The notes under the pieces were generated by a model. That model worked only from the letters and a program-made list of their open reading frames with translations, made no database searches and was not told where the DNA came from. Of a stretch of DNA of 64,000 nt, positions 2,540 to 53,490 are shown in pieces; positions within the stretch are counted from its first letter, which is position 1, and every line of letters starts with the position of its first letter. A program made the position numbers and the translations under genes. Source of the stretch: Isurus oxyrinchus (taxonomy: Eukaryota); NCBI GenBank assembly GCA_026770705.1, contig JANJGN010000041.1, positions 1,178,001 through 1,242,000 on the forward strand, in the 5' to 3' direction.

Positions 2540-3790
2540 CCTGCCACTGTTGCATGTGCTACAGATCAACTCTTCGATGTTTCGGCATACCTGATGCTGT
2601 TCCTGACATTGTCTCTGCATTCTACTTTGTGCCATGTTTGCACTCTTGATTTGTTGGTTATGGTGGATTGTGGAATATGCTGGGCCATCATTGGTGATTG
2701 AGGTTGCTGCACAAATCTGCTGCTGCTGATGGCCCACAGTACCTCACATACGCCCTGTTTAGCGCTGCTAGTTTTGTTCTCAATGTAATACGTCTAAGAC
2801 AGTGGAACTGACGCTCAACACGATGGAATGATTCCTCAGTGTGAAGACAACACATCCACTCCAAAGCTTTGTGCAGTGATCACTCCAACTAAGACAGCCA
2901 TTGGCACATGCAACAACGAAAGTTGTTGAGGACAATATCAACATGTTTTTTTATTTGCATACTGCTTGTTCTTTCATCAGCTGGCACAGAGCAACCCTGA
3001 CAGATATGTCCTATTATTATTCCTTCGGATGGAGGTGTATGTGGTTAGGCCACATTTTTACTGCCCACCGTAAGTTGCCCTCGAGAAGGTGAGCAAGAGC
3101 CCTGTTCTTGAATCTTCGCCGTCCAGCTTCTTCATGGCTCAACCAAATTGTGAGCCGTACCACTGCTGAATCATTCCTGCTAATGAACATCTGGGACAAA
3201 CCATCAGAGTGCAATCTGCCGTCCCAGTACTCCTTAAACTTGGTGTTCAGCACACAGGACAAACTATCCACCAGCTGAGGGGAGATCATATTTGGGAAGC
3301 AGCAGGAGTCTTTCTTTCCTGTGTCTGAATGAATCTTCCTCCGCCCCAAGGCTCTGAGGAAGAGTTACACGGAACCCAAATGTCTGTGGGTTTATTTCAT
3401 CTCCTCAGATGCTGTTAGATCTGCTTGGCTTTTCAAAATGTTTCTGTTTTTTTTTCAGATTAGCAGCATCCGCAGTATTTTATTTTTCTCCTCGTTTTAT
3501 GTCTTTGCCCTGAAACTCTGTGAGGCAACATAGAGTCTGCAGTACATGGTGGGAGCTCTGAATTATTGCCCCACTGCACTGTCTGCCACTTTGCCGTTAC
3601 CCCGGATGCCTCTGTCCTGCTCGTGGTGCAGGGCATATCTTGCATTGTGCCAGAAGAGTCTGGGACATTGGCTGCAAATTGTGTGTGTCTGCGACCGGAT
3701 CTGTCGTGGTATTATCCCATGTCAAAGTGGTCCTGCCATTTGCCGACCTCCCCCTTCATCCCCTGTCAGTGCGTGGTGATGTAAATGTGA
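2540..3790 (-). mobile_element. Decayed CR1-group LINE 5' portion (APE), directly downstream of defensin gene A1; short Penelope-tail insert at ~3390-3495
   Basis: GPSAAA/CQEQHQ-type motifs shared with the copies at 10200-10580 and 20340-21440. Confidence 0.65.
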
Positions 3791-3831
3791 AATGAGCAAC
3801 GGACAAGAGGAGGTGATCAATGGCAGCAGGT

Positions 3832-3837
3832 TTTATT
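3832..3837 (-). terminator. Polyadenylation signal AATAAA of defensin gene A1
   Basis: TTTATT on the plus strand ~140 nt past the stop; the homologous position is AATAAA at 47806 and CATAAA in the 9.6-kb and 16.2-kb paralogues. Confidence 0.75.
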
Positions 3838-3974
3838 CACATGAAGGAGAAAACAGTGGGCCACGTTTTGCTGCATCTAGGGCAGGTGGCAGAGCGTGAC
3901 TTACACAAATGACAGTCAGCTTCAGTGGGAGCCTCAGACGGGACTCAGAATGTTACATGTCTACTTTTAGTGAC

Positions 3975-4093
3975 TCAATCCTTCATGCAGCACTTGAAGA
4001 AAGGAAGACATTTCTCTTTGATGCGGGTCTCACCTCTCTTACAGCGGCGGAATCTGCATTTCCCTCCAACGCTGGGACATCCCAGTAAAGCAC
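3975..4093 (-). CDS. Beta-defensin-like gene A1, exon 2 (mature peptide (G)ALLGCPSVGGKCRFRRCKRGETRIKEKCLPFFKCCMKD*)
   Basis: Acceptor ctcctgtctcttcaccag|GT, phase 1; six cysteines in C-x6-C-x4-C-x10-C-x5-CC spacing; 11 K/R vs 3 D/E; no internal stop. Confidence 0.9.
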
Positions 4094-4289
4094 CTGGTGA
4101 AGAGACAGGAGGTTATTGACGCCACAAGCCAGGTAAGTCGATTGTGGCCAAAACAGGGAAAATGTTCACTGTTCCCCAAGTGTGGTTTATCAGAAGCACT
4201 TTATCTGTGCATTGTATTCAAGAGAGCGCCTCACAAATGAAAATGGTGGTTTGGGCTTCGCACAGCCAGAATGAAAGCAACTTCTGTCG

Positions 4290-4530
4290 CACCTTCAATT
4301 TAATATAAAAACAATTAGTGAACTTAACAGGAACATGGTGAAAAACAACTTATACCAAGCCTCATGAAATGAGGAAAGGAATTCAGGGACATCTAAAGAC
4401 ACAGCCTCCAATGTTGGATGCACATTCTGACAGGATATGTGTGGGCGCAGGTATCCCCTCAGGGTTGTAAGACTGCAAGACAAGACAGAGATGGAGATGG
4501 AGACAACAATTGGAAAAGGGAGATAAGGGA
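4290..4530 (-). mobile_element. Decayed L2 LINE 3' end inside the A1 intron
   Basis: ctctgtcttgtcttgcagtcttacaaccctgaggggatacctgcg resembles the L2 YLCNLLQPYNPPRxLR segment; homologous to 14930-15290 and 46670-47020. Confidence 0.6.
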
Positions 4531-4867
4531 AGGATTTGTCCACATGGTATTGAGTTCATGGAATGCATCATCAAGGGGCCGAATGCAAATGAGAAATACG
4601 AGGGGAAAAGGAGATCAGTTTCTATGATAAGGCTCGCTGCTGGTTATCTAAGTAAAAAAAAAAACATTTCTTGCGAATGGTGTGAAAGTGCACAAGGCTA
4701 AAAATAGTAGATTTACATTTGGGTATCATTTTTAACGGTTCTAGGCTCCTCGAGTAAAGTAAATATTTGCCCTGTACCAAGTCAGTGATAGTGCAGGCTT
4801 GAGTGGTTGAATGGACACGTGTTCCAATCAATATTGCTCAAGAGTCACTATTGAGAGACACGCTCAC

Positions 4868-4955
4868 CTCCCAATTGTACAATCTCTTGGAGCGAGATAG
4901 AGAGAGTCTCTCCCAGCAACAGGAATCCAAGTACCACGAACAGAGCTTTCGACAT
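4868..4955 (-). CDS. Beta-defensin-like gene A1, exon 1 (signal peptide plus short propiece, MSKALFVVLGFLLLGETLSISLQEIVQLG)
   Basis: ATG at 4955; basic N-terminus, hydrophobic core and T-L-S cleavage-type site; phase-1 donor GGAG|gtgagc is compatible with exon 2; intron 4094-4867. Confidence 0.88.
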
Positions 4956-5007
4956 CTTCTCCTGAGCTCCTGAGAGTCACAAGAAGATATTCGGTGCAAC
5001 GATGTTC

Positions 5008-5067
5008 TTTATAGGAATTGAGCGACTGTTCACCAGTTAATAATAACATGCACTCAGTGGCGATTGG
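5008..5067 (-). promoter_or_regulatory. A1 promoter: TATAAA (5008-5013), HNF1-like GTTAATAATAAC (5036-5047), CCAAT (5063-5067)
   Basis: TATA ~53 nt upstream of the ATG; the same layout recurs upstream of the three other exon-1 copies. Confidence 0.7.
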
Positions 5068-5379
5068 CTGCACGTTAACAGTGCTGATGATGCAATAACT
5101 ATTCCAAGCCGGATTTGTGATAATTAAGAAGGAGACAGATCTGTGTAATGATTGACCTGGAGAAGATTTAGTAAACAACGTCACTGTGTTAGAAGTAAGA
5201 ATCATTTTGCACAAAATATGGCCATTTTGGCCATTTAGCCTCTCTTGGCCTTTGCCAGAGCTACCGAATTCTGCCGACTCTATATCTCCTCATTCTCCAT
5301 AGCTCTGTCATTTTTAAAATTTCAAATTCAATCATTTCAATAATTGCATAATCTTCCATTATCCTTCCAGGAAGCACTG

Positions 5380-7540
5380 CTGGTGGATTTATTTTTCATG
5401 CCAAAGGGAATTCAATAATGGCATTGATGTGTACCATCCAGCATCAGAAACGCTGATGCCCTTTCACATAAGTTAACTTCTCGATGCCCTCGCAGCAAGT
5501 CAATATTTGTGGTTGGTGTTGACTGATCGACTTTCTTGATAAGCTCGTCTGATCATCGCCTGTGATATGAATCTGCCGTTGTTATCGCGTTCATTTTTCG
5601 GTAATTAATGCAGAGTGTTTGTAACCCATCTGTTTCCGCATCATTACAATGGCTGAACTCCAATTAGTGTGTCTAGGCGCTATCCTGCCGTGTTGAAGCA
5701 GAAATTGAATTTCCTCCTGTTCTATTGTTAATTTTACTGGATTTCATCTCTAATCGTATTGCCTTTTTGAAGTTCAGTTCCCCTGCTCAGTATCATTTAC
5801 AGCCGAAAATGCATTCCCCAATTACTTTGTATGACTGCAATAGTTTTTATTCAATCACTTTGACGCTTTTCTGAAAGGTAACAAGGACAAATTTATGTTC
5901 CTGAGTACTTCCTTATTATGCATTTAAATCAGAGGTAGGTCAGTTTCAGAATCCTTAGCCTTTACCTCTGTTCCCTTACTTACAACTACGTGTACCTCTT
6001 CCTGTTTATCCTCTCTGTTAAAAATATATTTAAACCAATTTCAATGATGCACCGGCCGGCTCTTCCTTCTACGTGGGGTACTCTACTACAGAGATTACCA
6101 CACCCAGCCAATTTTCAACCTGGTGAGGCCCGGTAAACATTGCCTTCAAATGTTCACTTGACACTGGGAACAAAACTAACAGTTTGCCCAGAGCTAAAAA
6201 ACTACGAGCATTTATCCTTTCACCTGTATTTGCCTTCGACTCTTGCTGAGGTATAACTAACATTTTCCTGCTTATCTCTGATGCCTTCCTCAATCTTTCT
6301 CTGAAAATCGCCACATGGTTCAAAAAGGTATTCTCTGAACTTTGCCCCACGAAGCTCGCCTGAATCAGTTTGAACTTTCCCCTCATTGCATGACCATAAA
6401 TTAACTCAAAAGGACTGAATCCTTTTGACACATTAAGGATGTCCGTAAAGGAAATCATAAATAATAGAATCCCTCGAAAATAACCATGTAGATAGCCTTG
6501 AACACATACGCTAATTATAGCCTTTATGCAGTGTTATCACCTTTTGGAGGCACACTGTAATTCAGGGGGATCCGCTGATTCATAAATTGTTATATTCCTA
6601 GGCTGTCCATAACTTATCTACACCGCTGTGATATGAAATTCCAACCCTGATCCGATTATATTTCTTTTGTTAATCCATATCTTGTAACGAAAGATGATTT
6701 ACTCCATTACAATCAACTTTGCTGCTTTTTTTCCTTAAAGGCAAGCTTCTGGCAATGTCGTGGACACATATATGACTGTCAGTAAGTACTGATTCCCACA
6801 TTTAGTCTGAAGGAGGTGTCCTACACAATCAATGAGGACACTGTTAAATGATTCCTCAAACGCTGGCAATGGAATTAAATGTGGAGGTTTAACAAATGCT
6901 ATAGCTTTTCCTTTAAACTGACATATGCGAAATGTTTGACAGAATTTGTGTACATCTTCATGTAGTCAAGTCGAATAGATTATTTCCTCCGTTGTCATTA
7001 GCTTGGGTTTTCCTAATTCACACATTTACAGCGATTGGAATTTCATGAGGTGCTCTCAAAATTTAATTCCAGTACACAGATGGTATCACTACTTCGTGCA
7101 ATATTGTCCACTCTCCATCTATATGAACAAGACGCTGCCTCCATTTCTTCATTGACACACTCTGTAATGCATTCTGCTTTTACTTCAGAGTAACCGGTGA
7201 GGTTTACCTGCTTTACGAGTGGGCATTGCATCTTTAGCTCCACTAATGAACTGAATACGTCAGTCTCATCCTCTTCAACACTCTCATCCTGAGCAATATT
7301 TTCAAGGATTTATCCAACCAAATGAATTTCAGCATTGTCTGCCTGTCTGTTAGAATATTTCACTTCCTGTGTAAATGTGTTCACCTGTCGTTCAGTCACC
7401 ACACAGTCTGGAAACACTAGGATTCTCTTTCTGTACAATCTCTGCTGATTCTGTCTCAACAGGCTGTTCTACTACAATAGGCTCTTGCGACACTGCAGTT
7501 GATAAAGGCTTATTTGTCTAAAATCAAAATGAAAAATTGA
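5380..7540 (-). mobile_element. Decayed Gypsy (Gmr1-type) pol: integrase upstream of RT
   Basis: GFSPFELIYGH integrase C-terminus (ORF 6069-6458); RT start (SNWSSAIVM...CINYRKMNAIT) lies at lower coordinates, i.e. downstream on the minus strand. Confidence 0.85.
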
Positions 7541-9300: not shown

Positions 9301-9371
9301 GTTACATGGCAACTGGGTGCGGCAGAGCCTTGAAAGTTGGTAGCACTGAATTATTCCTTTCTGTTTCCAAG

Positions 9372-9490
9372 GACAACGGAGAGAGTGTGATAATGTGTGA
9401 GGCACCTGCAGATTTGTCCAATGTTACAGATATGAGAGGTGGTTCTTGGCATACTTCATATTTTGGCTTACTTGCTGCATAAGAAAATAG
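9372..9490 (+). pseudogene. Beta-defensin-like pseudogene A3, exon 2: QRRECDNV*GTCRFVQCYRYERWFLAYFIFWLTCCIRK*
   Basis: Acceptor ttcctttctgtttccaag|; C-x6-C-x4-C-x9-[Y]-x6-CC; internal TGA at 9398-9400; Cys4 position is TAC; no exon 1 found upstream (Gypsy junction at ~8440). Confidence 0.85.
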
Positions 9491-9689
9491 TTGCCTAAAC
9501 ATAACACGTCCCTATATGTGATATGTCCATGGCTCTGACTGGAGTTAACTGTAATTCCATAAATCATGCTCTGATACATTCTGAGGATCCAATGACCACG
9601 GCCCACTGATTTCTGCATCATGTCCATAAAACTGGCTGCATCGATCACTGCCTCTTGTCCATGTCTCAATTTGCACTCGGATCGGAGCG

Positions 9690-14290: not shown

Positions 14291-14453
14291 TTTCACAGTG
14301 AAAAATTCGTTTAATCCTTCACCTGTTCAATTATTATGCTTATCGGTGTGTCTGTTGATTAATAAAATCCGGTTTGGGAGGCACATTTAGATGTGGATTC
14401 CAGTTTCTGTCGGTCTCAGTTAGTGATGTATTCCTTTGCTGTGGACAAGGTTG

Positions 14454-14515
14454 AGCCAACCCTCACCGTGTGTCTGCAATTATTAACGACAGAATTCTCT
14501 GTCTGTTCATATAAA
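14454..14515 (+). promoter_or_regulatory. A2 promoter remnant (GCCAA, ATTATTAAC HNF1-like, TATAAA 14510-14515)
   Basis: Alignable to the A1 promoter over ~200 nt. Confidence 0.6.
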
Positions 14516-14929
14516 GAGCTTCTGTATACCAATCATCTCACTGTGACTCTGCTGATCTCATGGGATGAGGTCGAAAGCACTGGTCTCAGTGCTTTGACTG
14601 CTGGAGCTCATGGATTCCCAGCTTATCGGTACGTTATCCACAGAGGTTATCTCAGAATTGTCAAACTTTAGAAACATTCTCTGGAACAGGAGAAGGCCAT
14701 TCAGCCCCTAAAACCTGTACACTCATTCAGTTGGATCACGGCTGACAACTGTCTTAACACCACTGGACAATCTTCGTTCCATGACCATTAAAATCCTATC
14801 CATACAGTAAGCTGTCAGTCTCAGTGTTGAGCCTTTTTTCAAAAACTGCGCACTTTATTTTTAATGACCCAACCTCAACTATCAACCACTGAAGAGCTTT
14901 CCCTTGGTGATATCTTGAATTAATCATAC

Positions 14930-15290
14930 AGAATGTTTCCCAATGTCTCCATTGTCTTGTCCCACTGTCTCTCTGTAATCTCCTTTAACCCAAACAGCCG
15001 TCCAGATAGCTGTGCCACACAAATGTTGCCCTCCAATCCATTCCAAAATATTAATTGGCCTGCCATTGGTCACAGTGCCTTCAACTGATTGGGACTAAGG
15101 CCGGAAATTCCCACTGTAAAACTATGCAATGCTCTCTCCTTCCTGGTGATAGCCCTACAATCCACCATCTTCGAGTTAGCGTTGGGTCACCTTCCACTAA
15201 TCCCTGTTAATGTGACTCTGTGTCAAATCATTTTTCTAACATGCTGTCTTGAGGCACCGCGTGAAATTTCATGATGTTGTTGCATAAGCT
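14930..15290 (+). mobile_element. L2 LINE 3' end in the A2 intron
   Basis: gtgccttcaactg...ggaaattccc...tgtgactctgtgtcaaat resembles an L2 tail. Confidence 0.65.
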
Positions 15291-15299
15291 GCATCATTC

Positions 15300-15910
15300 T
15301 GATCGTGCACTCTTCAGGACTCCATATCCCTCGGTTAGATCACAGATAGAGCATTGCGCACAATTCCCGTCTCCAATCCTTTCGGTTAGAGAGCACTTTA
15401 ACCACTGTGTAGAGTTCTGGTCTCGATATACCTCAGCGAGACCGCATTCGGAACACTCTGCACAGTTCTGACCTCAATATCCCTCGATTAGATCACACTT
15501 AGAGCGCTGTGCACAGTTCTGCCTTCTGTATCCCTCGTTTGGACTACATGTGGAGCACTCTGCACTTTTCTGGTCTTTATACCTCTCGGTTAGAAAACAC
15601 TTGAAGCACTGAACATATTTTTGATCGCCAGATCCCTCAGTTAGACGACAGTCGGACAATGTACGTACTGCTGGTTCCCATACTCCACGGATAGACTACA
15701 CTTTGAGCATTGTGCAGAGTTTTGGTCTCGACACCTCTCGGTTAGACCACAATTGGAGCACTGTCCATATTTCGGTCTCCATCTCCCTCGGTTAGACCAC
15801 ATTTGGAGCACTGTGCACTTCTCTGGTCTCCATATGGCTCGGTTAGATCACATATGTCCAATGTTCACATATCAGGTCTCCATGTGCGCACGTTAGCCCA
15901 CATCTGGTTC
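15300..15910 (+). repeat. 51-bp CR1-derived minisatellite (about 12 units) in the A2 intron
   Basis: Repeated ctccatatccctcggttagaccacacttggagcactgtgcacagttctggt variants. Confidence 0.9.
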
Positions 15911-16279
15911 AGCTGCATGTGGGTGCCCAGCGGTTCTGACCAGCGGCACTAATGAGCACTTTCTTTCTGTTTCCATTCGCTATCTTGCTGTGTGATGGGA
16001 GTGGAATGTCCTACAGAAGACTCCCATGTGAGGATTCTGATGCATACAGGGCCAACGGGAAATGCAACCTCACCTTCATGTTCAAGAGCTGCCAACCTCT
16101 TTGAGTAACGCGCAGGCAGGATGTCCGACGCCTGAGGATTGGACTGAAGCGAGTTGGAATTTCTGTCATTCAGGCTCTGCTTCCTTCTGTAGGTCCAATG
16201 GGCAATTATCGAATGCTTTCTGAATCATGTGCATAAAACTGGCTGCATTGCTCACTGCTTCTTATCTGCGTCTCATTTC

Positions 16280-17370
16280 TCACTCAGATCGGTGTATCAA
16301 AGTACCGACAGGGAATGAGGGGAGGTGATGTTATGGCCGGGCCATACTGTCTTTCTTTAGATCCAAAACAGTCACCGACAAAGTGTCTTTCCTTACGGTT
16401 ATTGACCTAGGTTCAACCGTTGCCATCCCTGTGTACGTTCTGCCAGGCAGACCCTCAAAATCTGAGGCACGCTGGTTGACATTGGGTGGGGGCAGTGGGT
16501 AAAACTCTGAGGACCCTGTTTCGAACCCCGCCATGGCATGTGTTGGAATTTCAATTCAATTAATTTCTGGGGGTAACAATTCTAACAATAACCAATGGAA
16601 CTAGTACCAATTATCATAAAAGCCCATTTGGTTCACTAATGCTCTTTAGGGAAGGAAATCCGCCGGTCTCGTCTGCAACTGAAGCCAGGTGCACAGCAAT
16701 GTTTCTGACTCTTCAAAATGGCCTATGAACAATTGCAATTAGGCTTGGACAATAAAAGCTGGACTCCCGTTTTAGGTTCAAAAAGTAATAATTGAGCCCA
16801 CAACCTCGCCAACAGCATGTATGATGTCTCGACCCAACAGTAAAAAAAACTCAGGAAAGAAAGTTTTCTGTTGATTTCTGTTGATGTCATGAGGTCTGAA
16901 AAGAGACAAGGACACCGCATTCCGATTCCTAACCTCCCTCGCTCGGCTGATCAACCTGTTCTCCTCCATGCCAGTCAACAATTGGGATACATCTGAAGAC
17001 AAGTGGACACATGATGTCAACTATATGAAGGAGGAACGGGTAGAGACTTTAATGTGCGTCTCCAAGAGTGGTTCAGTAACTTCACGCCTGACCGTAGTGG
17101 TCGACCCCTGAAGGACATACCTGTCAGACTTGGCCTGCGACAGAAGGTGAGAGGAACAACAAGAGGGGGAAATTTCACTTCACCGGGCCTCAAAAATTTA
17201 CCCACCGTAGTTGCCTCTGCTCAAGGCGGCATAGGGAGGGGTGAACACCGCTCAGCACCTATGAAAATAAATCATCAGGACACACGCCATTATGTTGTTT
17301 GGAACACCTGCCGTGATAAACTCCATACATTCAGAGCATGTCCAGCAGCTCAAAACGGAGGGAGATCAAT
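16280..17370 (+). mobile_element. CR1-group LINE APE interrupted by a SINE
   Basis: QEWFSNFTPDRSGRPLKDIPVRLGLRQKVRGTTRG (ORF 17054-17500). Confidence 0.75.
16480..16780 (+). mobile_element. tRNA-headed SINE
   Basis: B-box-like gtttcgaacccc, then ggttcactaatgctctttagggaaggaaatc; paralogous copy starts at ~48055. Confidence 0.7.
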
Positions 17371-19418: not shown

Positions 19419-19590
19419 NNNNNNNNNNNNNNNNNNNNNNNNNNNNNNNNNNNNNNNNNNNNNNNNNNNNNNNNNNNNNNNNNNNNNNNNNNNNNNNNNN
19501 NNNNNNNNNNNNNNNNNNNNNNNNNNNNNNNNNNNNNNNNNNNNNNNNNNNNNNNNNNNNNNNNNNNNNNNNNNNNNNNNNNNNNNNNNN
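19419..19590. other. Assembly gap (172 N) preceded by a (CT)n microsatellite
   Basis: Run of N in the sequence. Confidence 1.
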
Positions 19591-36312: not shown

Positions 36313-36776
36313 TTACTGTAAAAGTGAACTGGTTTCCCACTGTAAGTTGCCTAATTTTATACAGAATTTCACAAGGTACTGCATTCCGCTCTTCAGCTCC
36401 TCCCAAAACTTAGCCTGTGTCAGCACATAAATGAATGTATTTGTGCAGCAACTGAGGATCCCAAGCATGGATCCATCTGACTGAAGCGCATTTTCGCCAG
36501 AATTCGATGTGATTGTTACATGCATAGAGATAATATATATAACCGGAGTTGTCCAGAGCAATATAAAGCTCCCGGTTATACTTAAGAGTAAAATAACGTA
36601 CGTTCTTCGGCTTTCTATTTCAGAATCCTTGCAGCAAATGCGGAGACACCTGCTAACTTTACTGGCCGCCAAAATACGTCTAGCCGTCAAAATATTTAGC
36701 AACAAAATTAGGATAAATGGAACACCTGGCGTCAAGATAATGGTAAACAATTCAAATGCAGCCCATTCAGCTGAAA
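36313..36776 (-). pseudogene. GPR139/GPR142-like class A GPCR, C-terminal half (TM5-TM7), 5'-truncated
   Basis: WAAFELFTIILTPGVPFILILLLNILTARRIL...ILLLSITGSFILLW...MLGILSCCTNTFIYVLTQAKFWEELK; abuts defensin intron sequence at ~36776. Confidence 0.85.
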
Positions 36777-37014
36777 TTATAAGACTCGCTGCTGATAATC
36801 TAAATACAAAAAAAAAATAATCGAATTGTGTGCAAATGCACAACCCTAAAATTGGTAGATTTACATTTGGAAATCATTTTTATGGTTCTAGACTGATGGA
36901 GTTAAGCACATATCAGCCCTGTACCAATTTAGTGACAGAACAGACGTGAATGGTTGAATGGACTCCTGTTCCAATTATTATTGCTCATGAAAAACTACTG
37001 CGAGATGCACCCTC

Positions 37015-37519: not shown

Positions 37520-40500
37520 ATGCTCGTGTCTTTATTTTTCATGCCAAAGGGCATTCAATAACTTGCATTGATGTGGACGATCCAGCATCTGAAATTATGA
37601 TGCACTTTCAGATAAGGGTACTTGTCAATACCCTCGCAGCAAGGATTATTTTTGAGGTAGGTGTTGACTGTCCGACTTTCTTGATATGCTTATCTGATCG
37701 TCGCCTGTGATATGAGTCTGCCTTTCTTATCGCGTTCATTTTTCGGTAATTAATACATGGTGCTAGTATCCCATCTGGTTTCCACACCATAACAATGGTT
37801 GAACTCCAATTACTGTGGCTAGGCCCTATCATGTTATTCTGAAGCAAGAATTCAATTTCCTCCCGCACTTTAGATAATTTTACAGGATTTCATCTATATC
37901 CGTGTTGCTCAATTCCCCGCCTCAGTGTTATGTACAGCCAAAGATGCTTTCTATAATTTATTACCAATAATTGCTTTGTATGACTGCAATCGTTCTTTTC
38001 TGTCACTCTGACGTTTTGGTGGAAGGGAACTTAACCACACATTTATGTTCCTAAGTCCTTCCTCAATATTCAATTAAATCTGAGGTAGGTCAGTTTCAGA
38101 ACCCTTATGCTTTACCTCTGTTCCTTTACTTACAACTAGCTGTACCTCTTCTGTCGAAAGGTCATGAGGACTCGAAACGTCAACTCTTTTCTTCTCCGTC
38201 GATGCTGCCAGACCTGCTGAGTTTTTCCAAGTAATTCTGTTTTTGTTTTGGATTTCCAGCATCCGCAGTTTTTTTTTTTTGTTTTTATAGCTGTACCTCT
38301 TTCTGTTTATCGTGTCTGTTAAAATATCTTTAAGCACTTTTACATGGTACAGTCGCCGGCACTTCCTTCTACCTGGGTTAATTTACGACATAGTTTACAA
38401 CAAACAGTCCCTTTTCAATCTGGCAAGGCCCACTGAACATTGCCTTCAAATGTTCACCTAATGCTAGGAACAAAACTATCACTAAACTAACAGCCAAAAA
38501 CCTAAGAGTCTCAGCCCTTTCAGCTGAATTTGCCTTCGTCACTTGCTGAAGTATAATTAATTGTTTCCTTGTTAGCTCACGTGGCTTCCTTAATCTTTCT
38601 CTGAACATTGCCATATATTCCAAGAAACTACTTTCTGAATTTTGACCCACCAATTTCTTCTGAATCAGTTTGAACTTTTCCCTCAGTTCATGACCATAAA
38701 TTAACTCAAAAGGACTAAACCCTGTTGACACATTAAGGATTTCCGTAATGGAAAACAACAAAAATGGAATCCCTCGTAATCAACCATGTGGATATTCTTG
38801 ATCACTGACGCTAATTATAGTGCTTATGCACCGTTATCAACTTTCTAAGACACACTGTGATTCAGGGTCATCCGCTGACGTCATAAATTGTTTTATTCCT
38901 AGGCTATCCATATCTTATCTAAACAGTTGTCACATGAAACTCGAACCCTGATCCGACTGTATTTCTTTTGGTAATCCATATCATGTAATGAAAAGTGGTT
39001 TACTCCACTACAATCAACTTTGCTGCACTTTTGCTTAAAGGTAAGTTTCTGGAAATCTTGTGGACACATATATGATTGTCAGTAAGTACTGATTCACACT
39101 TTTAGCATAAGTAGCTGTCCTTCACAATCAATATGAACACTGTTAAATGGTTCCACAAACGGTGGCATTTGAATTAAATGTGGAGGTTTAACTGATGCAT
39201 TATGTTTTCCTTTCACCGGACATGTGCGATTTTATTGACAGAATTAGGCTACATCTTTATGTAGTCAAGTCCAATAGCTTAATTTCTCCGTTGGAATAAG
39301 CTTGGCTTTTCGTAATTCCCACAGGTACAGCAATTTGCATTTTATGAGGCACTCTCAAAATTTAATTCCACTACACAGATGGTATCACTACTTCGTGCAC
39401 TACTGCCACTTTCCATCTATATGAGCAAGATGCTGCCTCCATTTCTTCATTAACAAATTGTTCTGAATGTAGTTAAACTCTGTAATGCATTTTGTTTCTG
39501 CTACAGAATAAACTGTCTGGTTCATCTGCATTACGACTGGACACTGCAAATTTAGCTCCACTAATGAACTCTATACTTCACTCTCATCCTCTTCAACCCT
39601 CTCATCCTGAGCAATATTTTCCAATATTTATCCAGCCATTGAATTTCAGCATTGTCTGCCCGTGTGTTAGGTTATTCCTCTTCATGCGTAAAGGTGCACA
39701 CCTACGGTTTAGTCACCACACAATCTGGAAACAAACCAGGATTCTCTTTCTGTACAAACTCTGCGGATCCTGTCTCAAAAGACTGTCCCACTACAATAGG
39801 CTATTACGATGCAGCAGTTGATAAATACTCAGTTGTTTAAATTCAAGAGGGAAAATTGAACAACTGTCATAGGCCTTACTGGCATGATTTAGATGCAAGT
39901 CGGAATTCAGAAATAAAACCAATAATAATCACAAGGTTTTTTTAATATAAAACTAATGTAAGCATTTATTAATTTAACAACAAATTGTAACATCTGCACA
40001 TGTCTAAAAATTATTAACATAATACATTTTAAACAAATTCTGAAATTATGTGCTCCCAGATAAATCTTCACCAAGGCACCAATAACTGATAGACTTTGAA
40101 TAGACACCAGGCCAAGCAAATCTGACCTTAAAAATTCAAAATGCGGTTCATTTCAATTTGTTTATTTTGCAGACACAGTTCCAGGCGAACAGGCTGGTTT
40201 GCTCTTAGCTGTCTGTGACTCGTACAGACAAACGCATTTCTGTTTAAATCTAGCTTTCCCTTTGAATGCAAATTTTCAATTGCATTACAAGTTTTTTTTA
40301 CTTTCCTTCTCCTAACAATAATCCTTTTATTCCACCAATTTTATTAGCAATACTTGTTTGTGTCACCTAGCTTGGTGCAAGGTTTTCTCCATTCCTTTGA
40401 ATGCTTTATTCAACAAATGTGCATTCCATTTTACCTTATACTGCTCCCATTTATCTAATTAAAACCCCAAGCTACTATGCATCATATCACCCAGCCGAGG

Positions 40501-42700
40501 TGGCTTTCGTCCAGATAAGAGACACAGTCACAAACATAGACACAGACACTACAACAATTCCAGTTTTGAAACAATTTCCTATAACATTGTCGACATTAAT
40601 CACTTAATGTCAAATAATTGTCATTACCTGTCACCCGGCCATATAATTCCGCAGAATAAAATGAACCCTGCATGAGCAGTTCCTCTACGACCCCCTCAAC
40701 CAATTCCCTCGATAGCAATTCATTGTTTTTAAAGTTACTTGATACAATGAAATAGGTTTGACTCCTCCAGTAATCCCACCAATTAACAAGCTCCTGCTAT
40801 TAACCTCCTGCAGAACAAATGACACTCTTCCAAACTATTTTGGAATGTCTAGCACTCTTGTCCATTGACATTTTGGCATCATTTCCTGCTTGCCCCTATT
40901 AACATGGATATTCCTTCCATTTCCAAGTAAAATCTCTAAACTTCTTAGTACCCTGCCCTTCAAGACTCCCTTGGGTAAGTTGAGAACGCATTTCCACTTC
41001 TCTAGCTATCACTGATTCTACCTGTTCCAACTGTTCAAAAAAATAATATATTTGTCTATCTTGCAAAAAGTCCTCGGAGCTCACCATAGGCTTATTGCAA
41101 AACTGATCAGAGTTCCTGTCAGTGAAATTGGTCTCCCGTTGAACCTCCAACATTTTGATCTCATATGTTCAACTTCAGTAGTGTTAACTTACCAGTTTCC
41201 TTCCTTCAACGCTACTTTCCACCTTTCGATATTTCATAGGCTGACACCCTTCAGCTTGAATCTTTTCCCAACGATTTCAACATGACTTGCTTTGCTTCAT
41301 CTCAAATTTTCCTGCTGATTTCCATCTTGCATTTTTCCTGCATTCAACTGATAATCTGTAATTTCGTAAACACAGGCTAAAACAGCAGCTTGGCTGTTCT
41401 TTATGGCTTTGTTTTTCTTTTACCTGCGCCTCAGTATTTACAGGAATGCTATTTTTTGATATTTCCATAATCATAAAGTCTTTTACTTTTTCAAAAGTCT
41501 TGTCTAATTTCAATGCCCTCAACCATTGATCCCAGGTTATTTCTGTTTTCCTTTGCAAAATCTGCACGTCTGAATAGGAATCCTTTTTATCGTACTTCCC
41601 AACTACTGATATAACACTCTCATAAGCATTTAGTAGTGCTTTCTTTACTATCTCGTTATATGCAGATTGTTCCTCTGATAAGCTTGTACCTAGCAAACAC
41701 TTTATTACATTACAGTCCAAACATCTATTACACAATTCAATTCCATTGCGACCTTTTCAAATGAGGCAAAATATCTTTCAAAACCATCCTCTCTTAATTT
41801 AGACACTAACCGAAGATGTTTATTTAAAGTAAATTTTTGAAAGGAATCACTAACTTTTTTTTCTAAGTTACACATTCAACAATTCGTACTGTATGCCTTC
41901 TTTCCCTCTCTGCAGCGCTCTATCTTTCTTATTCCTTTTAACAATTGCTAACTTCTCTCTCTGAAGTTGAAATTTAAGCTTTTGCAGTTCTACCTCTTGT
42001 TTTACGTTATTTTCCTTTTTCCAGCTCACCTTTCTCCATACAAGCTTTTTAATGCCCATTTATTTTAACCTGTTCTTTTCTTATTCAAGTTTTATTTTTT
42101 TTCCACAGTTTATTATAATTTGAATTATTTTTTTCTTGTTCACATTTTTCTCTTTCTGACAATTCATGCCTTTGTCTTTGCTTTCTCTTCCCCGATCAAG
42201 CTGCCAAACTTGCAATTGAAGTCATTCCACTTCTATCTGAGGCACATTAGTCCCACTTGCCCCTTCCTACAACTTTAAGACCTTTAACCATATCATCCTG
42301 ACGAAATTCCACTTTTATCTCTACACTGCACTTTTCAGATAACATAATAAGCTGAGTTTTAGTCAGTGATTTCACTGCTTCCCAGTAAAATTTTCACTCC
42401 CAGAAAAGGCATAGCAACTGCAAAGCCTTTTTTTAGTCCAAACTTTAAGGTCCCTCGGCACAAACTCCTGAGTTCAGTGTTCTTCATGGACTCGTATCCT
42501 TTGGATTCATAACATCCATCCCAAAGAACGAATGTAAATAATGCCACAAATTTTCCCCCAAATTTTTCATGACCAGAGGAGATGTTAATTGTTGTGTAAT
42601 CCAAATCCCAGGGGAAACTTGGCTTACCTTGTTGTTGTGTTCTGGAAATGAGATGAAAACCTATTGATCTCAACAGCAACAGGTATAATCACATGTTTGG
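37520..42700 (-). mobile_element. Decayed Gmr1-type Gypsy element: SCAN-like gag (~40800-42550), nested LTR (~39865-40630), integrase, RT
   Basis: LSEEQSAYNEIVKKALLNAYE...WDQWLRALK (gag); GFSPFELIYGHELR (IN); EIEFLLQNNMIGPSHSNWSSTIVMVWKPDG...CINYRKMNA (RT). Confidence 0.9.
38151..38287 (+). mobile_element. Young short Penelope-terminus insertion with a 14-bp TSD
   Basis: TAGCTGTACCTCTT at 38137-38150 and 38288-38301; empty site at ~5987-6000 in the paralogous block. Confidence 0.85.
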
Positions 42701-45700: not shown

Positions 45701-46267
45701 CAGTTGAAATATATTGATCATAATTCACAATGTAATTCGAAGGAAGATGAAGAGAATGTCTTTATGGCACAGCGAGTTGTTGTAATCTCGAATGCGCTGC
45801 CTGGAAGGGTAACAGAAGCAGATTCAATAGCACCTTTCAAAATGGGAATTATATCAATAATTGGCAAGAAAAAAAATGGCAGGGCGATGGGGAGGATAAG
45901 TTATGGAGGGGCCATTATTCGGTAAACCTCTCAATGAAGCAGCAGATACAACATGGGCCAACTGGCCCTCATCACTGCGGAATGATTCTAATGTTTTCAC
46001 AGTGAACAAATCCTTTAATCCTTCACCTGTTCAATCGTTACACGTATCAGTGCCTCTGTTGATTTATAAATGCCGGTTTGGGAAGATCAATTAGAAGTGG
46101 ATTCCAGTTACTGTCAGTCGCAGTTAGTGAAATGTTCTTTTGACGTGCAAAAGGTTCAGTCAATCCTCATCTTGTGTCAGCACTTATTAACGGCAGAATC
46201 CTCTCTCGGTTCATATAAAGAGCATCCGCACACCATTCATCTCATGTGACTCTGGGGCACTCGGTGG

Positions 46268-47668
46268 ATGATATGGTAATTACTGCTCTTGGTGCCTTGA
46301 CTGCTGCTGCTGGTGGGGTCCAAGCTTATCGGTAGGATATCGACAGGGGTTATCTCACAGTTGCCAAACTCTAGAAACATTCGCTGGAACAGGAGAAGGC
46401 CATTCAGCCCCTCAAACATGTTCTTACATTCAATTGGATCATGGCTGATAGAAATCTTAATTCCATTGGTCAACCTTGCTTCCATGAACATGAAAATCCT
46501 TACGAGACAGAAAGCATTCAGGCTGAGTGCGAGCCTCTTTCAAAAACTGAACACTTTATTTTTAGTAACCCAAGCTCAACAATGAACAACGGAGGAGCTA
46601 TCCTCAGACACCTCGTATTTCCCATCCACATTCTGCCCCTTGGTGAGATATTGAACTAGTCGTACAGAATGTTTACCAATCCCTCCATCGACTCGCCCCT
46701 CTGACTCTCTGCAAACTTCTTTAGCGCAAAAACATGTGCCCCACTAACTCTGCCCTCCATCCCATTCTGAGGTATTAGCTGGCTGGCCTTTGGCTACCAT
46801 GCCTTAAGCTCATTGGGTCCAAGGCTGGGATTAACCACTGCAAAGCTATCCACCCCTCTGTCCACCCTGGATATGGCCCTTCAATCCAACCTCTTCAAGT
46901 GAGTGTTGGGTCATCTGCCATTTATACATGTTTTTGTGACTCTGTGTCAAATCCTTTTTCCACCATGCTGTCTTGAGGCACCATGTTAAATTTCATGAAG
47001 TTGTTGCATAAGCTGCATCGTTCTTATTGTGAATTGTGCTGGACTCCATATCCCTTGGTTAGACCAAACATAGAGTATTGTGCACAATCCTGGTCTCCTT
47101 AGCTCTTGGTTAGAACATACTTAGAGCACTGTGCACAGTATTAAGCTCCATATCTCGCGATTAGACCACACGCTGATCACAGTGCACATTTCTGTTCTCC
47201 ATATCTTCTGGTTAGAACACTCTCAGAACACTGAGCACAGTGCTTGTCACCGTATTCCTCGCTTAGACCATGCGTGGAAACTGTGCATAGTTGGATTTTC
47301 CATACTACTCTGTTAGACCGCACTTGGAGCACTTTGCAAAGTTCCCATCTCCATACCTCTCGGTTAGACCACAATCGGAGCACAGTTCTGTCTCCATATC
47401 ATTCGGTTAGACCACATATGCATCACTTAGCACAGTTCTGGTCTCCTTATGCGAACTCTAGCCCACACCTGGTTCAGGTGCAATTGGGTGCCCAGCGGTT
47501 CTGACAAGCGTCACTATTCAGCTTTCTTTCTCTTTTCCAGTCCCTATCGTGCTGTGCGACGAAGGTGGAAGGTTCTGTAGAAGACTCCCATGTGAGGATT
47601 GTGACACAACCAGGCCCAACAGGAGATAGAATCTTCCTTTCACGTTCAGGTGCAGCCAACCTCTTTAG
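46268..47668 (+). pseudogene. Beta-defensin-like pseudogene B2: exon 1 46268-46331 (MIW*LLLLVP*LLLLVGSKLI), exon 2 47541-47668 (PIVLCDEGGRFCRRLPCEDCDTTRPNRR*NLPFTFRCSQPL*)
   Basis: TATAAA 46214-46219; donor G|gtagga; strong acceptor tttctcttttccag|; Cys4 is TAG (47627-47629) and Cys6 is AGC; AATAAA 47806-47811. Confidence 0.88.
47030..47475 (+). repeat. 51-bp CR1-derived minisatellite (about 9 units) in the B2 intron
   Basis: Same unit as the 8810 and 15300 arrays; a 2-unit remnant also lies at ~44100-44205. Confidence 0.88.
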
Positions 47669-49371
47669 GTAACCAAGAGGTAGGATGAACCACTGTGAGC
47701 CCCACCTGAGGCTCCGACTGAAGCAAACTGGAATTTGTGTCGTTCAGGCTCTGCTACCTTCTGTAGGTCCAATGGTTAATGACCCACAGCTTTCTGAATC
47801 ATGTGAATAAAACTGGCTTCGTTGATCACCGCTTCGTATCAATGCCACATTTCTCACTCAGATCCATGTATCACCCTAGTGACAGGGAGTGAGGGGAGGT
47901 CAGGATATGGCGGAGCTGCACTGGCTTCATGTAAATCCAAAACAGTCACCGCCACAGTGTCATAATTTATTTTTAATGCCCTAGGGTAGCCCGTTGCCAA
48001 CCCTGTGTACGTTCTGCCAGACAGACCCTCAAGATCCGAAGGCATATTGGTAGAACATGGGAGGGGGCAGTGGTATAGTGGTATTGACAAGTAGTATGTC
48101 ATAAATGATCAGCTGTCCTTTTTTACTAACAGGCAGTTTGATGTTCATTCTTGATCATGCGCAACTTAGAATTATCAGAAAGCAAGCGAAAGACCCATGC
48201 TCAACCTATGGGGACCCGGGTACAATTCCCGCAATGGCAGATGGTGGAATTTGAATTTAATAAATATCTGGAGATAAAAATTGCAACATTGACCAAGGAA
48301 ACTATTACCGAATGTCAGGAAAACCATAACATGTTTAAGTTATATTAAGTCTGGACACGAATGAAGAACATATACCTTCAAGTCACTCTTGAATATCCAA
48401 GTCTGAAAACAAAAGGCTTGGCTGAAAATGTTGCCCATCAACCACCGCAACTAACACCTTTCAACACCCCCTCCCCAGCCCCAACCCACGACCCCTACCG
48501 ACTTTCTATTCACATCATTAAATGCGTCCCCATCAAGTCCAGGATTGCAGTGCCGATTGGAAGCAGACCCAGTTTTGAATCTTTCATTGTCTCCTGCCCT
48601 TTGCGACGGTCACATTGCAGTTAAATTGATGTCAGATGTCTGCTGTTGGAGAAACCCCATCGCTCCCTCTTTCATCAGTCTAGGAGCTTTGTAGAAATGG
48701 CAACAGAGGAACATGAGCCAAAGTGCCCTGTATCTTGTCACAGGTTCCTTTCCAAATTGCAAATTATTAATGCGTCAGAAAGAGTAACTGTTGCTTAAAA
48801 TAATGAATAATTAAACAGCCAATACACATTTTTATTCTCTATTTAATTTAGCAGGAAAATGTGTGGATTTTTTTGTTGTTATCTGTATTCTTAATTTGAT
48901 AGATAAAACAGAGGATCATCGTTTCTGTTAAACAATACTTATTTCAGCTGATAATTTACTGGTTCATTTTTTGGGTATTTCAAGTTACTTATTCGGAAAT
49001 GAATCCAGGAAATATATTGCTAACTTATTGATTTTATTTTATATAATTAGTTTGTTCAAACCTCGGCTACAGTAACATCTAATTGTGGAAAAATATTGTA
49101 TTTTTGACGAGTTTCTGTTTTGGCAGGGATGGCCAAGTCACTTTGAGTGCTGATCTTTTTGTTAAACGTCTTTGCATATTTCATGAAACGTATTGATAGC
49201 ATGCAAATGACAAATTAAATCTTAGTGTAAATACATAATGATGTAGGGATGTAAACAGCGGTTTTGCTCTCCTAATACCTCGATTGTAAAAGGGCAAATG
49301 AAGGCAGACTTACATTTCTGAGAACATTTCTGTCGGACCTTGGTTGTTTCTAATGGACTTTGATTTTCTAA

Positions 49372-49525
49372 TCAAAAACAGAATTCGCTGGAAAAACTCA
49401 GTAGGTCTGGCAGCATCAGTGGAGAAGAAAAGAGTTGACGTTTCGAGTCCTCATGACCATTCGACAGAACTTGAGTTCGAGTCCAAGAAAGAGTTGAAAT
49501 ATAAGCTGATTTAAGTTGTGTGTGT

Positions 49526-49556
<31 letters not shown>

Positions 49557-50746
49557 GGTGGTTGGGGAAGGGGTGGGGGTGGCGGGGAGGTGGGGGGCGG
49601 TGGTGGGGAGAGAGAGAGAGATAGAGAGAAGTGGAGGGGGTTGGTGTGGATGTACGGACAATCAAGCAGTGATAGAAGCAGACCATCACAAGATGTCACA
49701 AACAACTGAACAAAAGAACACATAGGTGTTAAATTGGAGATATTATCTAAACGAATGTGCTAATTAAGAACGGTTGGTACGACACTCAAGGTATAGCTCT
49801 AGTGGGGGTGGGGAGAGCATAAAATATTTAAAAATATTTAAAAATAATGGAAATAGGTGGGAAAAGAAAAATCTATATAATTTATTGAAAAACAAAAGGA
49901 AGGGGGAAACAGAAAGGGGCTGGGGATGGAGGAGGGAGCTCAAGACTTAAAGTTGTTGAATTCAATATTTAGTCTGGAAGGCCGTAAAGTGCCTAGCTGG
50001 TAGATGAGCTGTTGTTCCTCCAGTTTGCGTTGGGCTTCACTGGAACAATGCAGCAAGCAAGAGACAGTCATTTGGGCAAGAGAGCAGGGTGGAGTGTTAA
50101 AATGGCAAGCGACAGAGAGGCTTGGGTCATTCTTGCGGACAGACCGCAGGTGTTCTATAAAGCGGTCGCCCAGTTTAAATTTGGTCTCTCCAATGTAGAG
50201 GAGACCACATTGGGAGCAACGAATGCAGTAGACTAATTTGGGGGAAATGCAACTGAAATACTTCTTCACTTGAAAGGAGTGTTTGGGCCCTTGGACGGTG
50301 TGGAGAGTGGAAATGAAGGGTCAGAATGTGCATCTTTTACGTGGGCATCGGGTGGTGCCAAAGGAGGGGGTTGAGGAGTAGGGGGCGATGGAGGAGTGGA
50401 CCAGGGTGTCCCGGAGGGAGCGATCCCTATGGAATGCCGATAGTGGGGTGAAGGGAAGAGGTGTTTGGTGGTGGCATCATGCTGGAGTTGGCGGAAATGG
50501 CAGAGCATGATCCTTTGAATGCGGAGGCTGGTGGGGTGATATGTGAGGACAATGGAGACCCTGTCATGTTTCTTTGAGGGAGGAGAAGTCTTGTGGCCGG
50601 ATGCGCCGGAGATGGCCCGGACACGGTTGAGGGCCCTGTCAACGACCGTGGGTGCAAAACCTGGGTTAAGGAAGAAGGAGGACATGTCAGAGGAACAGCT
50701 TTTGAAAATAGCATCATCGGAACAGATGCAACGGAGGCGAAGGAAC
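49372..50746 (-). mobile_element. Penelope-like retroelement, 5'-truncated (RT C-terminus plus GIY-YIG endonuclease), with internal (GT)n/G-run
   Basis: LVYCIRCSQCGLLYIGETKFKLGDRFIEHLRSV...VACHFN (ORF 49940-50269); FLRLRCICSDDAIF...VLTYHP. Confidence 0.92.
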
Positions 50747-53275
50747 TAATGCTTGCATCATTTCCTACAGGGTCATCAGAAAAGCAGTATTCAGTGTGTA
50801 CACATTATCTGAACGTGTAAGTTTGTTATGATTGGTCTGATTGGATCTGCCGCAGCTAATCAATATTTGATACTTGCAATCGATATTCAAAATTTTGAAT
50901 GAGAGGTAGCTTATCAACTCACAAGCTGATCCAGAAATGTAAACTGCTGTTCACCCTTAATCGACTAATTCTTCTTAATGTTTTCAAAGTTCGTCTAAAT
51001 CATTAATCAATAACTTGTTTAAATAATCTGATTCAAATTATTGATCACCACCCAATCAATAGACAATAATGCATTGCATTGTTGTTTTCCTAAGTTCCAG
51101 TTTGCAACACCTATGCATCAGTCAGTTATTTTGCATAACCTTAAAAGAAGCTAATACTTCAGTCAACTCTCTATTGTGAAAATATGAATTTTCCATTCCT
51201 AATCTATTCCTCTCGATTGTCACTGGAGATTTTACTCGGAAGGCTGTTCTGAACCCTTACCTGATCCATGATAGCCTATCCCTCACTACTGCAATCAGGA
51301 CTACACACACAATTACAATTAAGGATATGCATGTAGTCTAGTGTTATGTAACTTATTTTGAAATGCACATGAAGATCTGATAAACGTTTGAATTCAGAAA
51401 TTAAATTTCTGGCAGCATCAAATCTGTCCCTTCAGATTCACTGAAATTTTTGCCCCTCGAAATGCAAGCGGATGTTAATTAGGTAAGCAAAATGATTTAT
51501 ATGATGCAGCCGGGATTATCCAAGTATCAGAAAAAAAAATGCTTCATTTATACGGATAAGTGAATTTAATCAGTAGTTCACATAAATGTTTAAACTGTAA
51601 ACTGCTCCATAATAACAAAGCATTGAATCAATTCTCTAATTCGCTCAAAAGTTATTACTTTTTGAAAGAGAATTACATATTCATTTACCAAACAATTATA
51701 AAATGCATTGGTGATCTGATACCGACATATCTACATGAAATTAGATTAAACGATGATTAATTTAAACATGGATTTGTTAAGAGCTCGTTCTATATCAGAT
51801 GGTAATCAACAAATATCAAAATAATTCTTCCAATCACATCTTAGCTTTTTCAAATTCTTTACAAACACAATTCGATGTGCAAATCGTGGTCAATTTCTCA
51901 CTGGGTTTTCAACATTTGCTGTCCAGCAGGAATCAGTATTCAGATTTTCATGTCTAAACGGTTCAGAAGGATTCTGCACTGGAGATAAAAATGATACTTT
52001 TTTTCCCTTTCGGAAAGAAACTATTTTGTTCTTCACACAATCAAACAATGTACATCTCTCTGTGCCCTGAGTAGCAAAAAGCTGAGTTAAAGTGCAGTAG
52101 AATTATGTTTTTTGAATTGCTCATTCAACATATTTTGATTATCCTCTCATTCCCATTGCCCTTGCATTTTACCATATCGATTCAACGTGCTTTAAAACTG
52201 GCCTGGCCAGAAAGGAACATGGCCATGCACCCAAACTGACACTGCCCTCAAATTGCCAATAAATATTCCGCAATCAATATAATCAGTCAGCATGACAATG
52301 TCACTTTTTCCCATTCAGACATTAAACTGCCCCTTGTTCAGTTCTGATTATACCAGACTTCCCAGCTTGCATAGCAATGTTGCTTCAGTCCTTCTGCACT
52401 GAATCAGCGATAGACTGATCCTCAACTTTACCTCGACAATACTCAGCCTGCCTATCAATATTCAATTACTCAACATGCATGAAAACGCAAGCCTGGTCTG
52501 CCCTTCACCCTGAATAATCATTCACCCCACCATTCCGCGTAACCATATTTCCTTCCTTGGGTTGTTGTTGAACGCCAACATGAGGGTGCCTGAGTAAACA
52601 TTCACTCAGCCTCGTCTATGTGGGAAGTTTTTTGTAGTCCAGTGATCATTATAACATTTCCTGTTTATTACAATTCCACCTATACCATCCCAAGTGCCCA
52701 AGCGTGCCCAGGGCTAGGTTTTGCCTTCACATTGTCTCTCATGTTGCACAGTGAAAATTCCGACCACTTACTGAATCTGTTGAACCTCCGGCACAAATTC
52801 CACCACTACATCTTCCAGAGAATAACTCTACTTTGCTAATTTTTTATTTTATGCCAACATTTCACAGTCCACATTGCTGTGCAACTTACGTAAATTCGCT
52901 CTTTTCACCTCCTATTTCCCAATTAAAATTTAACATGATGAGCCTTTTTCGGACCTTCAGTCAGTCCATTACACATTCTGCAAAACGAGCTCAATCTTCA
53001 TTGCACAAGAGCTGTCCAGAGTTCATTGAGGCTGCTGCTCTCTAAGGACGAATAATAAATTAATGCTGCACATTCCTGGGCACTCTGACAAGGTGCAATG
53101 CAAATTTAAAACACGTTGCTTTCGGAAATCCTGCCAAACATGCTTGCGACAAACACATTAAATGATGCACCAAGAAATTAAACTTGCACTGAATACCGTT
53201 TGCTGCAAACGGAACAAAAAAAAGTTCATCTTTGTTGTTTATCTCATGTTATGACTATCTCTCTCTCTCACACAG

Positions 53276-53490
53276 AGAACGACGTTGCAATTTTGATTCT
53301 TTCCCGAGGAAGGCGTGGTCTCTCCAAATACATTACATACTATATCATGGCAATGGCAACGGGTGATCTTCTTGTAGTTTGTGTTGATATCATACTGACC
53401 GTTTATTTCTGCTCATTGAGGCCTGTCTACCAGCTAACTGTGACAGTGCTTTGTGGAGTCATATCAGCCTCTATCTGGTTAACATTGACA
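53276..53490 (+). pseudogene. GPR139/GPR142-like GPCR exon-2 start (end of TM1 to TM3), 3'-truncated
   Basis: Acceptor ctctctctctcacacag|AG AAC; NDVAILILSRGRRGLSKYITYYIMAMATGDLLVVCVDIIL...SASIWLT; similarity stops before the DRY-equivalent motif. Confidence 0.8.

Follow-up and report, generated by a model that had tools for sequence, protein, structure and literature searches.

The 64,000-nt window analysed here is the whole stretch from position 1,178,001 to 1,242,000 of contig JANJGN010000041.1, in the Isurus oxyrinchus assembly GCA_026770705.1. On its minus strand, at 3832-5067, it carries an intact two-exon gene for a small, cysteine-rich and strongly cationic peptide, here named gene A. 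On balance we favour a genuine gene of beta-defensin type that probably still functions. Judging from its relatives within the window, it is most likely the one intact member left in a cluster of six paralogous modules that evolved by gene birth and death. It is most probably a new beta-defensin-type gene of a known family and not surprising in kind. The anatomy of the gene, its motif and charge, the predicted fold, the paralogy and the intact state were all observed here, and every weak signal obtained points to the beta-defensin family, though no single test was significant.

Structure of gene A

The minus strand of 3600-5300 was read directly and the motifs were placed by script; all coordinates are window positions (Table 1). 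An initial annotation of this DNA had proposed a CCAAT box, a TATA box, an 88-nt exon 1, a 774-nt phase-1 GT-AG intron, a 119-nt exon 2 and an AATAAA signal. Every one of these elements was found where it had been placed, and the translations proposed for the two exons match ours. The coding parts add up to 207 nt (88 + 119), or 69 codons, with the split codon G/GT at the junction, and exon 2 read from its third base runs for 38 residues to the stop. The first cysteine lies five codons past the acceptor, which gives the order of a leader exon, a phase-1 intron and then a cysteine-rich module.

In the window's list of open reading frames (ORFs), exon 1 appears only as a 35-aa read-through, and exon 2 has no entry in its frame. 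Gene A is invisible to the ORF track for this reason, as had been noted from the beginning.

Upstream of the gene, the GCCAATC motif is only partly kept across the four promoter copies of the cluster (alignment A1). A second promoter element, a conserved word with the core TTATTAAC, lies about 23 nt 5' of the TATA box and has matching columns in copies B, C and D, three of the paralogous modules described below. The word resembles an HNF1 half-site; as a putative site of this kind it would suggest expression in liver, gut or kidney.

The encoded peptide

The cysteine spacings in the exon-2 peptide are 6, 4, 10, 5 and 0 (C-x6-C-x4-C-x10-C-x5-CC), an arrangement within the range of the six-cysteine beta-defensin pattern C-x(4-8)-C-x(3-7)-C-x(7-13)-C-x(4-7)-CC. 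The net charge over the 39 residues is +8 (6 K, 5 R, 1 D and 2 E). Both the cysteine layout and the charge of about +8 are as first claimed. A Gly-x-Cys stands ahead of the second cysteine, which is a conserved feature of beta-defensins.

The loose form of the six-cysteine pattern was matched once in the six frames of the 64 kb, and a still looser pattern was also matched once. Of 300 shuffles that preserved dinucleotides, 5 contained the loose pattern (an expectation of 0.017 per shuffled window) and none contained the strict one.

Exon 1 most likely encodes a predicted signal peptide followed by the first part of a short propiece. The leader has a Lys at residue 3, followed by a hydrophobic core at residues 4-14 (about 12 residues), where the Kyte-Doolittle mean over nine residues reaches up to 3.2. 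Inspected by eye with the -3/-1 rule, small residues at -3/-1 permit cleavage after residue 19 or 21.

From these features a course of expression and action can be proposed. The TATA promoter would drive a short two-exon transcript of roughly 370 nt, a length that assumes a start about 25-30 nt past the TATA box and an end about 20 nt past AATAAA. The leader would route the product into the secretory pathway, with the signal cut after residue 19 or 21 and the short propiece perhaps trimmed. The six-cysteine domain, in an exon-2 peptide of about 35 residues, would fold as a three-stranded antiparallel sheet locked by three disulfides, which are expected to join cysteines 1-5, 2-4 and 3-6. The +8 peptide would then most likely act in host defence, binding anionic microbial surfaces and permeabilising membranes, and it may also signal to or attract immune cells, as other beta-defensins do.

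Family assignment

Peptide searches and folding, as well as the decay simulation presented below, were run exon by exon. For gene A the Pfam scan covered the exon-2 reading, and the only families listed at E<=10 were Defensin_beta_2 (PF13841) and Defensin_beta (PF00711). Among PDB sequences, a single match was obtained at E<=10, to mallard avian beta-defensin 3 (7lzl_A, E 0.076). The three clusters listed by the ESM Atlas were all of beta-defensins (0.86, with 183 of 256 shared features, 0.82 and 0.76), and its ten best matches (10/10) fell in one family or clan, which by the Atlas's own figures is a lead and no proof. Rival families did not surface in any search.

Word-indexed protein searches with the exon-1 and exon-2 readings returned zero candidates, and an exhaustive phmmer search of 1.84 billion representatives with the 39-residue query gave no genuine match at E<=0.001. 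The sole phmmer match, P0001, is a 417-aa tandem repeat and was dropped as a repeat artefact; it is presumably translated sequencing-adapter junk, of a kind that could catch Cys/Arg-rich queries. From the blank searches it follows only that those collections lack a close relative, whether annotated or predicted. The phmmer blank is uninformative on remote kin, because known beta-defensins are too distant to be found at that library size with a 39-residue query. The lack of a close relative in the protein collections would fit a gene overlooked by annotation. The blank searches and the ORF list agree with the original remark that annotation could easily miss this gene.

The 39-residue exon-2 reading was folded in a single-sequence AlphaFold run with five models, the best of which (pLDDT 79.8, pTM 0.50) has strands at residues 11-14, 22-25 and 34-38. 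In a Foldseek search of the PDB with the predicted model, the first 12 rows listed were all human beta-defensins, with HBD2 as the best match (TM 0.64, rmsd 1.9, 37% identity over 35 columns). With a second aligner the best match was HBD4 (Z 4.3, rmsd 2.1 over 37 residues). A scan of 48,161 PDB representative chains, made independently of Foldseek, yielded 28 chains with Z>=2, and 27 of these 28 were defensin-type: vertebrate beta-defensins (11), cnidarian defensin-fold peptides (7), alpha-defensins (5), big defensins (2), and crotamine together with the platypus defensin-like peptide (2). The one unrelated chain was a luciferase segment. The fold comparison, made on a predicted model, appears to point one way, to the defensin type.

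The initial annotation had put forward a beta-defensin-type gene, and this proposal is supported by layout, motif, charge, predicted fold and clustering, with no rival family. Two of the analyses that it had suggested bear on the family assignment. The Pfam Defensin_beta scan listed only beta-defensin families, both of them below the gathering cut-off. Structure prediction gave three strands and 27 defensin-type matches among 28, with the best Z at 4.3 and no Foldseek match at E<=0.001.

A cluster of six gene modules

Copies were located by searching the window with the gene (tblastn and blastn), by two DNA alignments (A1 and A2), and by nhmmer with both alignments; two further weak alignment-A2 matches (E 0.097 and 3.4) were disregarded. 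Four promoter/exon-1 modules and five exon-2/3' untranslated region (UTR) modules were found, the latter all at nhmmer E<1e-80, and they make up six gene modules on both strands, here named copies A to F, with gene A as copy A (Table 1). Across the modules the TATA box, the TTATTAAC word and the sequence block at the poly(A) signal are kept, and so is the position of the acceptor, which the gene A intron has in common with copies E, D and F.

Copy A is the only intact module among the six, and the other five are broken. In copy B the donor GT is changed to GA, while exon 1 is open and its peptide is 86% identical to that of A. The homology between A and B (5600-4615 versus 37745-36767, 81%) stops 340 nt into the B intron, at an insert resembling a G-protein-coupled receptor. 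Exon 1 of copy C is cut short by an early stop, and this copy has lost the acceptor AG and two cysteines; in copy D a stop interrupts the frame of exon 2 and CC has become CS. Copy E carries an in-frame TGA and lacks the fourth cysteine, and copy F has in-frame stops and lacks the first cysteines. Copies C and D form a subfamily, with a common 9-nt insertion and a mature region that is acidic, not basic.

Table 1. Coordinates of gene A and of the paralogous modules in the window.
Feature	Position	Strand	Evidence or remarks
CCAAT box	5067-5063	-	direct reading and script
Conserved promoter word, core TTATTAAC	5036-5047	-	columns T88-C95 invariant in 4/4 promoter copies (alignment A1)
TATA box, TATAAA	5013-5008	-	about 53 nt 5' of ATG; TATA.AGA invariant in 4/4 promoter copies
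Start codon ATG	4955-4953	-	context GAGAAGATGTC, A at -3
Coding part of exon 1, 88 nt (29 codons + 1 base)	4955-4868	-	translation; signal-peptide-like leader
Intron, 774 nt, GT-AG, phase 1	4867-4094	-	donor TGGGAG/GTGAGC; acceptor CCTCCTGTCTCTTCACCAG/G, pyrimidine tract then CAG
Coding part of exon 2, 119 nt with the TGA (3977-3975)	4093-3975	-	six-cysteine cationic domain
3' UTR, with AATAAA (3837-3832) at its end	3974-3832	-	block around signal kept in 5/5 exon-2 modules
Copy A, promoter/exon 1	5151-4769	-	nhmmer
Copy A, exon 2/3' UTR	4133-3782	-	nhmmer
Copy B, promoter/exon 1	37297-36916	-	without exon 2
Copy C, promoter/exon 1	14331-14742	+	copy C spans 14331-16295
Copy C, exon 2/3' UTR	15935-16295	+	
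Copy D, promoter/exon 1	46034-46445	+	copy D spans 46034-47869
Copy D, exon 2/3' UTR	47523-47869	+	
Copy E, exon 2/3' UTR	9332-9688	+	exon 1 not detectable
Copy F, exon 2/3' UTR	21801-21460	-	exon 1 not detectable

Divergence and intactness

Among the copies, the DNA encoding the mature peptide diverged faster than the UTRs. Mean pairwise identity was 0.46 in the exon-2 coding DNA, 0.61 in the proximal 3' UTR, 0.72 in the poly(A) block and 0.71 in the 5' UTR; the promoter (0.65) and the coding part of exon 1 (0.62) gave intermediate values. A coding exon that outpaces its own UTRs is the pattern expected from diversifying selection on a defence peptide, and the faster divergence of exon 2 would be hard to explain if the modules had never coded. 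Clusters with duplication and loss, and with a fast-evolving mature-peptide exon, are typical of beta-defensins.

The non-coding flanks of A and B are 81.4% identical (981 columns, 167 mismatches and 9 gap openings), which corresponds to a Jukes-Cantor distance of 0.197. Neutral decay was simulated per exon, and a copy was scored as intact when the ATG, GT, AG, open frame, stop and six cysteines were all kept. At a per-lineage distance of 0.098, that of the A-B pair, 1.7-3.4% of the simulated copies were intact, and at 0.05 the share was 12-18%. Given the low survival at the A-B distance, constraint on copy A very probably lasted through most of the period after the A-B duplication, although the copy may have died recently.

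Alternative explanations

Several results weigh against a functional gene of beta-defensin type. Neither Pfam nor the PDB gave a statistically significant sequence match to any defensin: PF13841 scored 13.8 bits (E 0.081) against a gathering cut-off of 22.2, and PF00711 scored 10.4 bits (E 0.7) against a cut-off of 21, so that neither was reached. The other four AlphaFold models had pLDDT values of 67.4 down to 40.9, and a single-sequence model may simply echo the cysteine pattern. Foldseek against the PDB returned nothing at E<=0.001, and the structural Z scores were all <5, low values that come from a query of only 39 residues. For copy A, selection is read only from its intactness. Gene death is common here, with five of the six modules of the cluster dead, and at a per-lineage distance of 0.03, as after a recent death, 28-36% of the simulated copies were intact. 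Finally, no sequencing run was listed as containing this stretch; five small runs came up by species label only (share 0.00), and four of them gave 0 contigs on 3700-5200 (30 bins), which is no proof of absence.

The broken state of the five other modules, the empty RNA bins and the simulated survival after a short neutral period are all in keeping with a young or silent pseudogene derived from a true beta-defensin-type gene, in which the 207-nt frame is still open and transcription or selection has been lost; the lack of an identical or close protein in the libraries searched agrees with this too. We nevertheless consider a pseudogene unlikely, since the signals are canonical throughout (TATA, A at -3, GTGAG donor, pyrimidine tract and CAG, AATAAA), all six cysteines and the Gly-x-Cys before the second one are kept, and intactness would be only 1.7-3.4% likely had the copy been neutral since the A-B split. 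It is more improbable still that the gene is live and of beta-defensin fold with a main job other than microbe killing, a shift that other peptides of this fold have undergone; it might then serve as a toxin-like or reproductive-tract peptide or as the ligand of a receptor, chemokine-like or melanocortin-type. The net charge of +8, to which Lys and Arg all along the peptide contribute, is a profile usual for host defence, the nearest sequence-level matches are host-defence beta-defensins, and the window holds no pointer to a venom or reproductive setting. Such a role would be consistent with the fold matches, in which crotamine, the platypus defensin-like peptide, an amylase inhibitor and channel toxins of sea anemones come to within about 1-2 Z units of the top-scoring defensins, and with the acidic mature regions of paralogues C and D, which indicate that the chemistry of the family varies widely.

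A chance open frame, in which a cysteine pattern and splice-like signals came together in repeat-rich DNA with no gene, would account for database matches that were never significant and for the same absence of RNA contigs. It is nonetheless very hard to credit in view of the rarity of the pattern in shuffled windows. Moreover, the motif lies directly past the acceptor, in the phase set by the upstream signal-peptide exon, and four to five paralogous modules repeat the promoter, exon 1, the acceptor and the poly(A) block (nhmmer E<1e-80). The fold search also yielded almost exclusively defensin-type peptides. A beta-defensin-type gene that is probably still functional is the reading that we retain.

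Comparison with known defensins

Gene A shares with vertebrate beta-defensins (HBD2/HBD4, AvBD3) the six cysteines ending in CC, a near-canonical spacing, the Gly-x-Cys and a strong positive charge, as well as a predicted three-stranded sheet and a setting in a multigene cluster with gene birth and death. It differs from them in its Pfam scores, which are under the gathering cut-offs, in its C3-C4 and C4-C5 spacings of 10 and 5, where 9 and 6 are common in beta-defensins, and in a longer stretch from the signal cleavage to the first cysteine (about 13-15 residues, counted from the predicted cleavage). The passages of a 2020 review cited here give the disulfide pairing of beta-defensins as Cys1-5, Cys2-4 and Cys3-6, and describe a phase-1 intron just 5' of the cysteine module as a hallmark common to the genes of beta-defensins and of big defensins (PMC7203481).

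For teleost beta-defensins, the cited part of a second source reports a mature cationic peptide of about 39-45 residues, a signal peptide of 18-26 residues, and genes split into three exons by two short introns; a gene of two exons with a single intron, as seen in mammals, is proposed there as the ancestral vertebrate layout (PMC8231796). Gene A has the motif and the cationic mature peptide in common with the teleost genes, but it differs in having two exons and one 774-nt intron, as in mammals. The statement made at the outset that teleost genes usually have three exons and mammalian genes two agrees with that part of the source (PMC8231796).

The big defensins of molluscs, horseshoe crabs and amphioxus resemble gene A, through their C-terminal domain, in fold class (oyster 6qbk, Z 3.5; 2rng, Z 2.3), and the portion of the 2020 review used here also reports for them a phase-1 intron right before the cysteine-rich module (PMC7203481). 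They differ from gene A, whose exon 1 encodes a leader only, and in the same portion they are described as having an N-terminal domain that is globular and hydrophobic ahead of the defensin domain (PMC7203481). The identity of gene A as a big defensin was rejected on these grounds: the hydrophobic globular N-terminal domain is absent, and the upstream exon encodes a 29-residue leader and nothing else. Alpha-defensin was likewise rejected as an identity, given that the cysteine order ends in CC and that alpha-defensins match residues 8-39 only, with lower Z. Crotamine, the platypus defensin-like peptide and the cnidarian defensin-fold toxins have the same predicted fold and cysteine framework (Z 2.2-3.9), but they are venom or toxin peptides of unrelated taxa, whereas at the sequence level gene A matches host-defence beta-defensins only.

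With regard to cartilaginous fish, a 2019 review contrasts, in the part cited, the many teleost studies with the work on shark peptides (PMC6795676), and the only cartilaginous fish entry in the table of marine antimicrobial peptides of a 2025 review is Kenojeinin I, which is not a defensin (PMC12734493). A full-text literature search found no description of shark, ray or chimaera beta-defensins, although most subscription journals are outside its coverage and such descriptions may exist. The range of beta-defensins is given as "teleost fish to mammals" in the 2020 review, as far as its cited passages go (PMC7203481). It is a serious possibility, which we put somewhat short of even, that gene A is an elasmobranch gene of an unannotated, fast-evolving beta-defensin repertoire that lies outside this printed range and has the two-exon, phase-1 layout proposed as ancestral.

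If so, the family could tie big defensins to beta-defensins at the root of the jawed vertebrates, and its peptides would need to function in body fluids of high osmolarity and rich in urea, a milieu in which most known beta-defensins lose activity. Should both the organism and the expression hold, the documented range of the family would be pushed back to an earlier-branching jawed vertebrate, and a very cationic peptide would become available for study in a high-salt, high-urea setting. The gene would also offer a direct test of the ancestral two-exon, one-intron proposal, as it is worded in the cited part of its source (PMC8231796). More generally, short two-exon peptide genes slip past ORF lists and, as indicated by the blank searches, past large protein collections.

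Other features of the window

A run of 172 N is located at 19419-19590, between copies C and F, and an absent exon could sit in or near it. Two similar ORFs, at 6069-6458 (minus strand, 129 aa) and 38378-38761 (minus strand, 127 aa), are found about 1.1-1.3 kb upstream of A and B, respectively, on the same strand as these copies. By eye they resemble the tail of a retroelement integrase, and they have no Pfam match. The presence of similar ORFs 5' of both A and B suggests that the A/B duplication unit is probably >2.5 kb. A protein search with a 139-aa ORF at 50269-50685 returned 33 candidates, none of them at E<=0.001, and a Pfam scan of six other ORFs of the window yielded nothing beyond weak matches under threshold.

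The ORF at 36313-36843 (minus strand) resembles by eye a piece of a rhodopsin-type receptor, with no Pfam match at E<=0.01, and sits where the homology of the B intron ends, as if inserted. Another ORF, at 53200-53544 (plus strand), is rhodopsin-type receptor-like, with a weak 7tm_1 match (E 0.0065) below the cut-off. Just 3' of gene A there is a short repeat at 3400-3487 (minus strand), which also occurs at 38193-38280, 49374-49425 and 41371-41439 with 65-77% identity and is probably an interspersed repeat.

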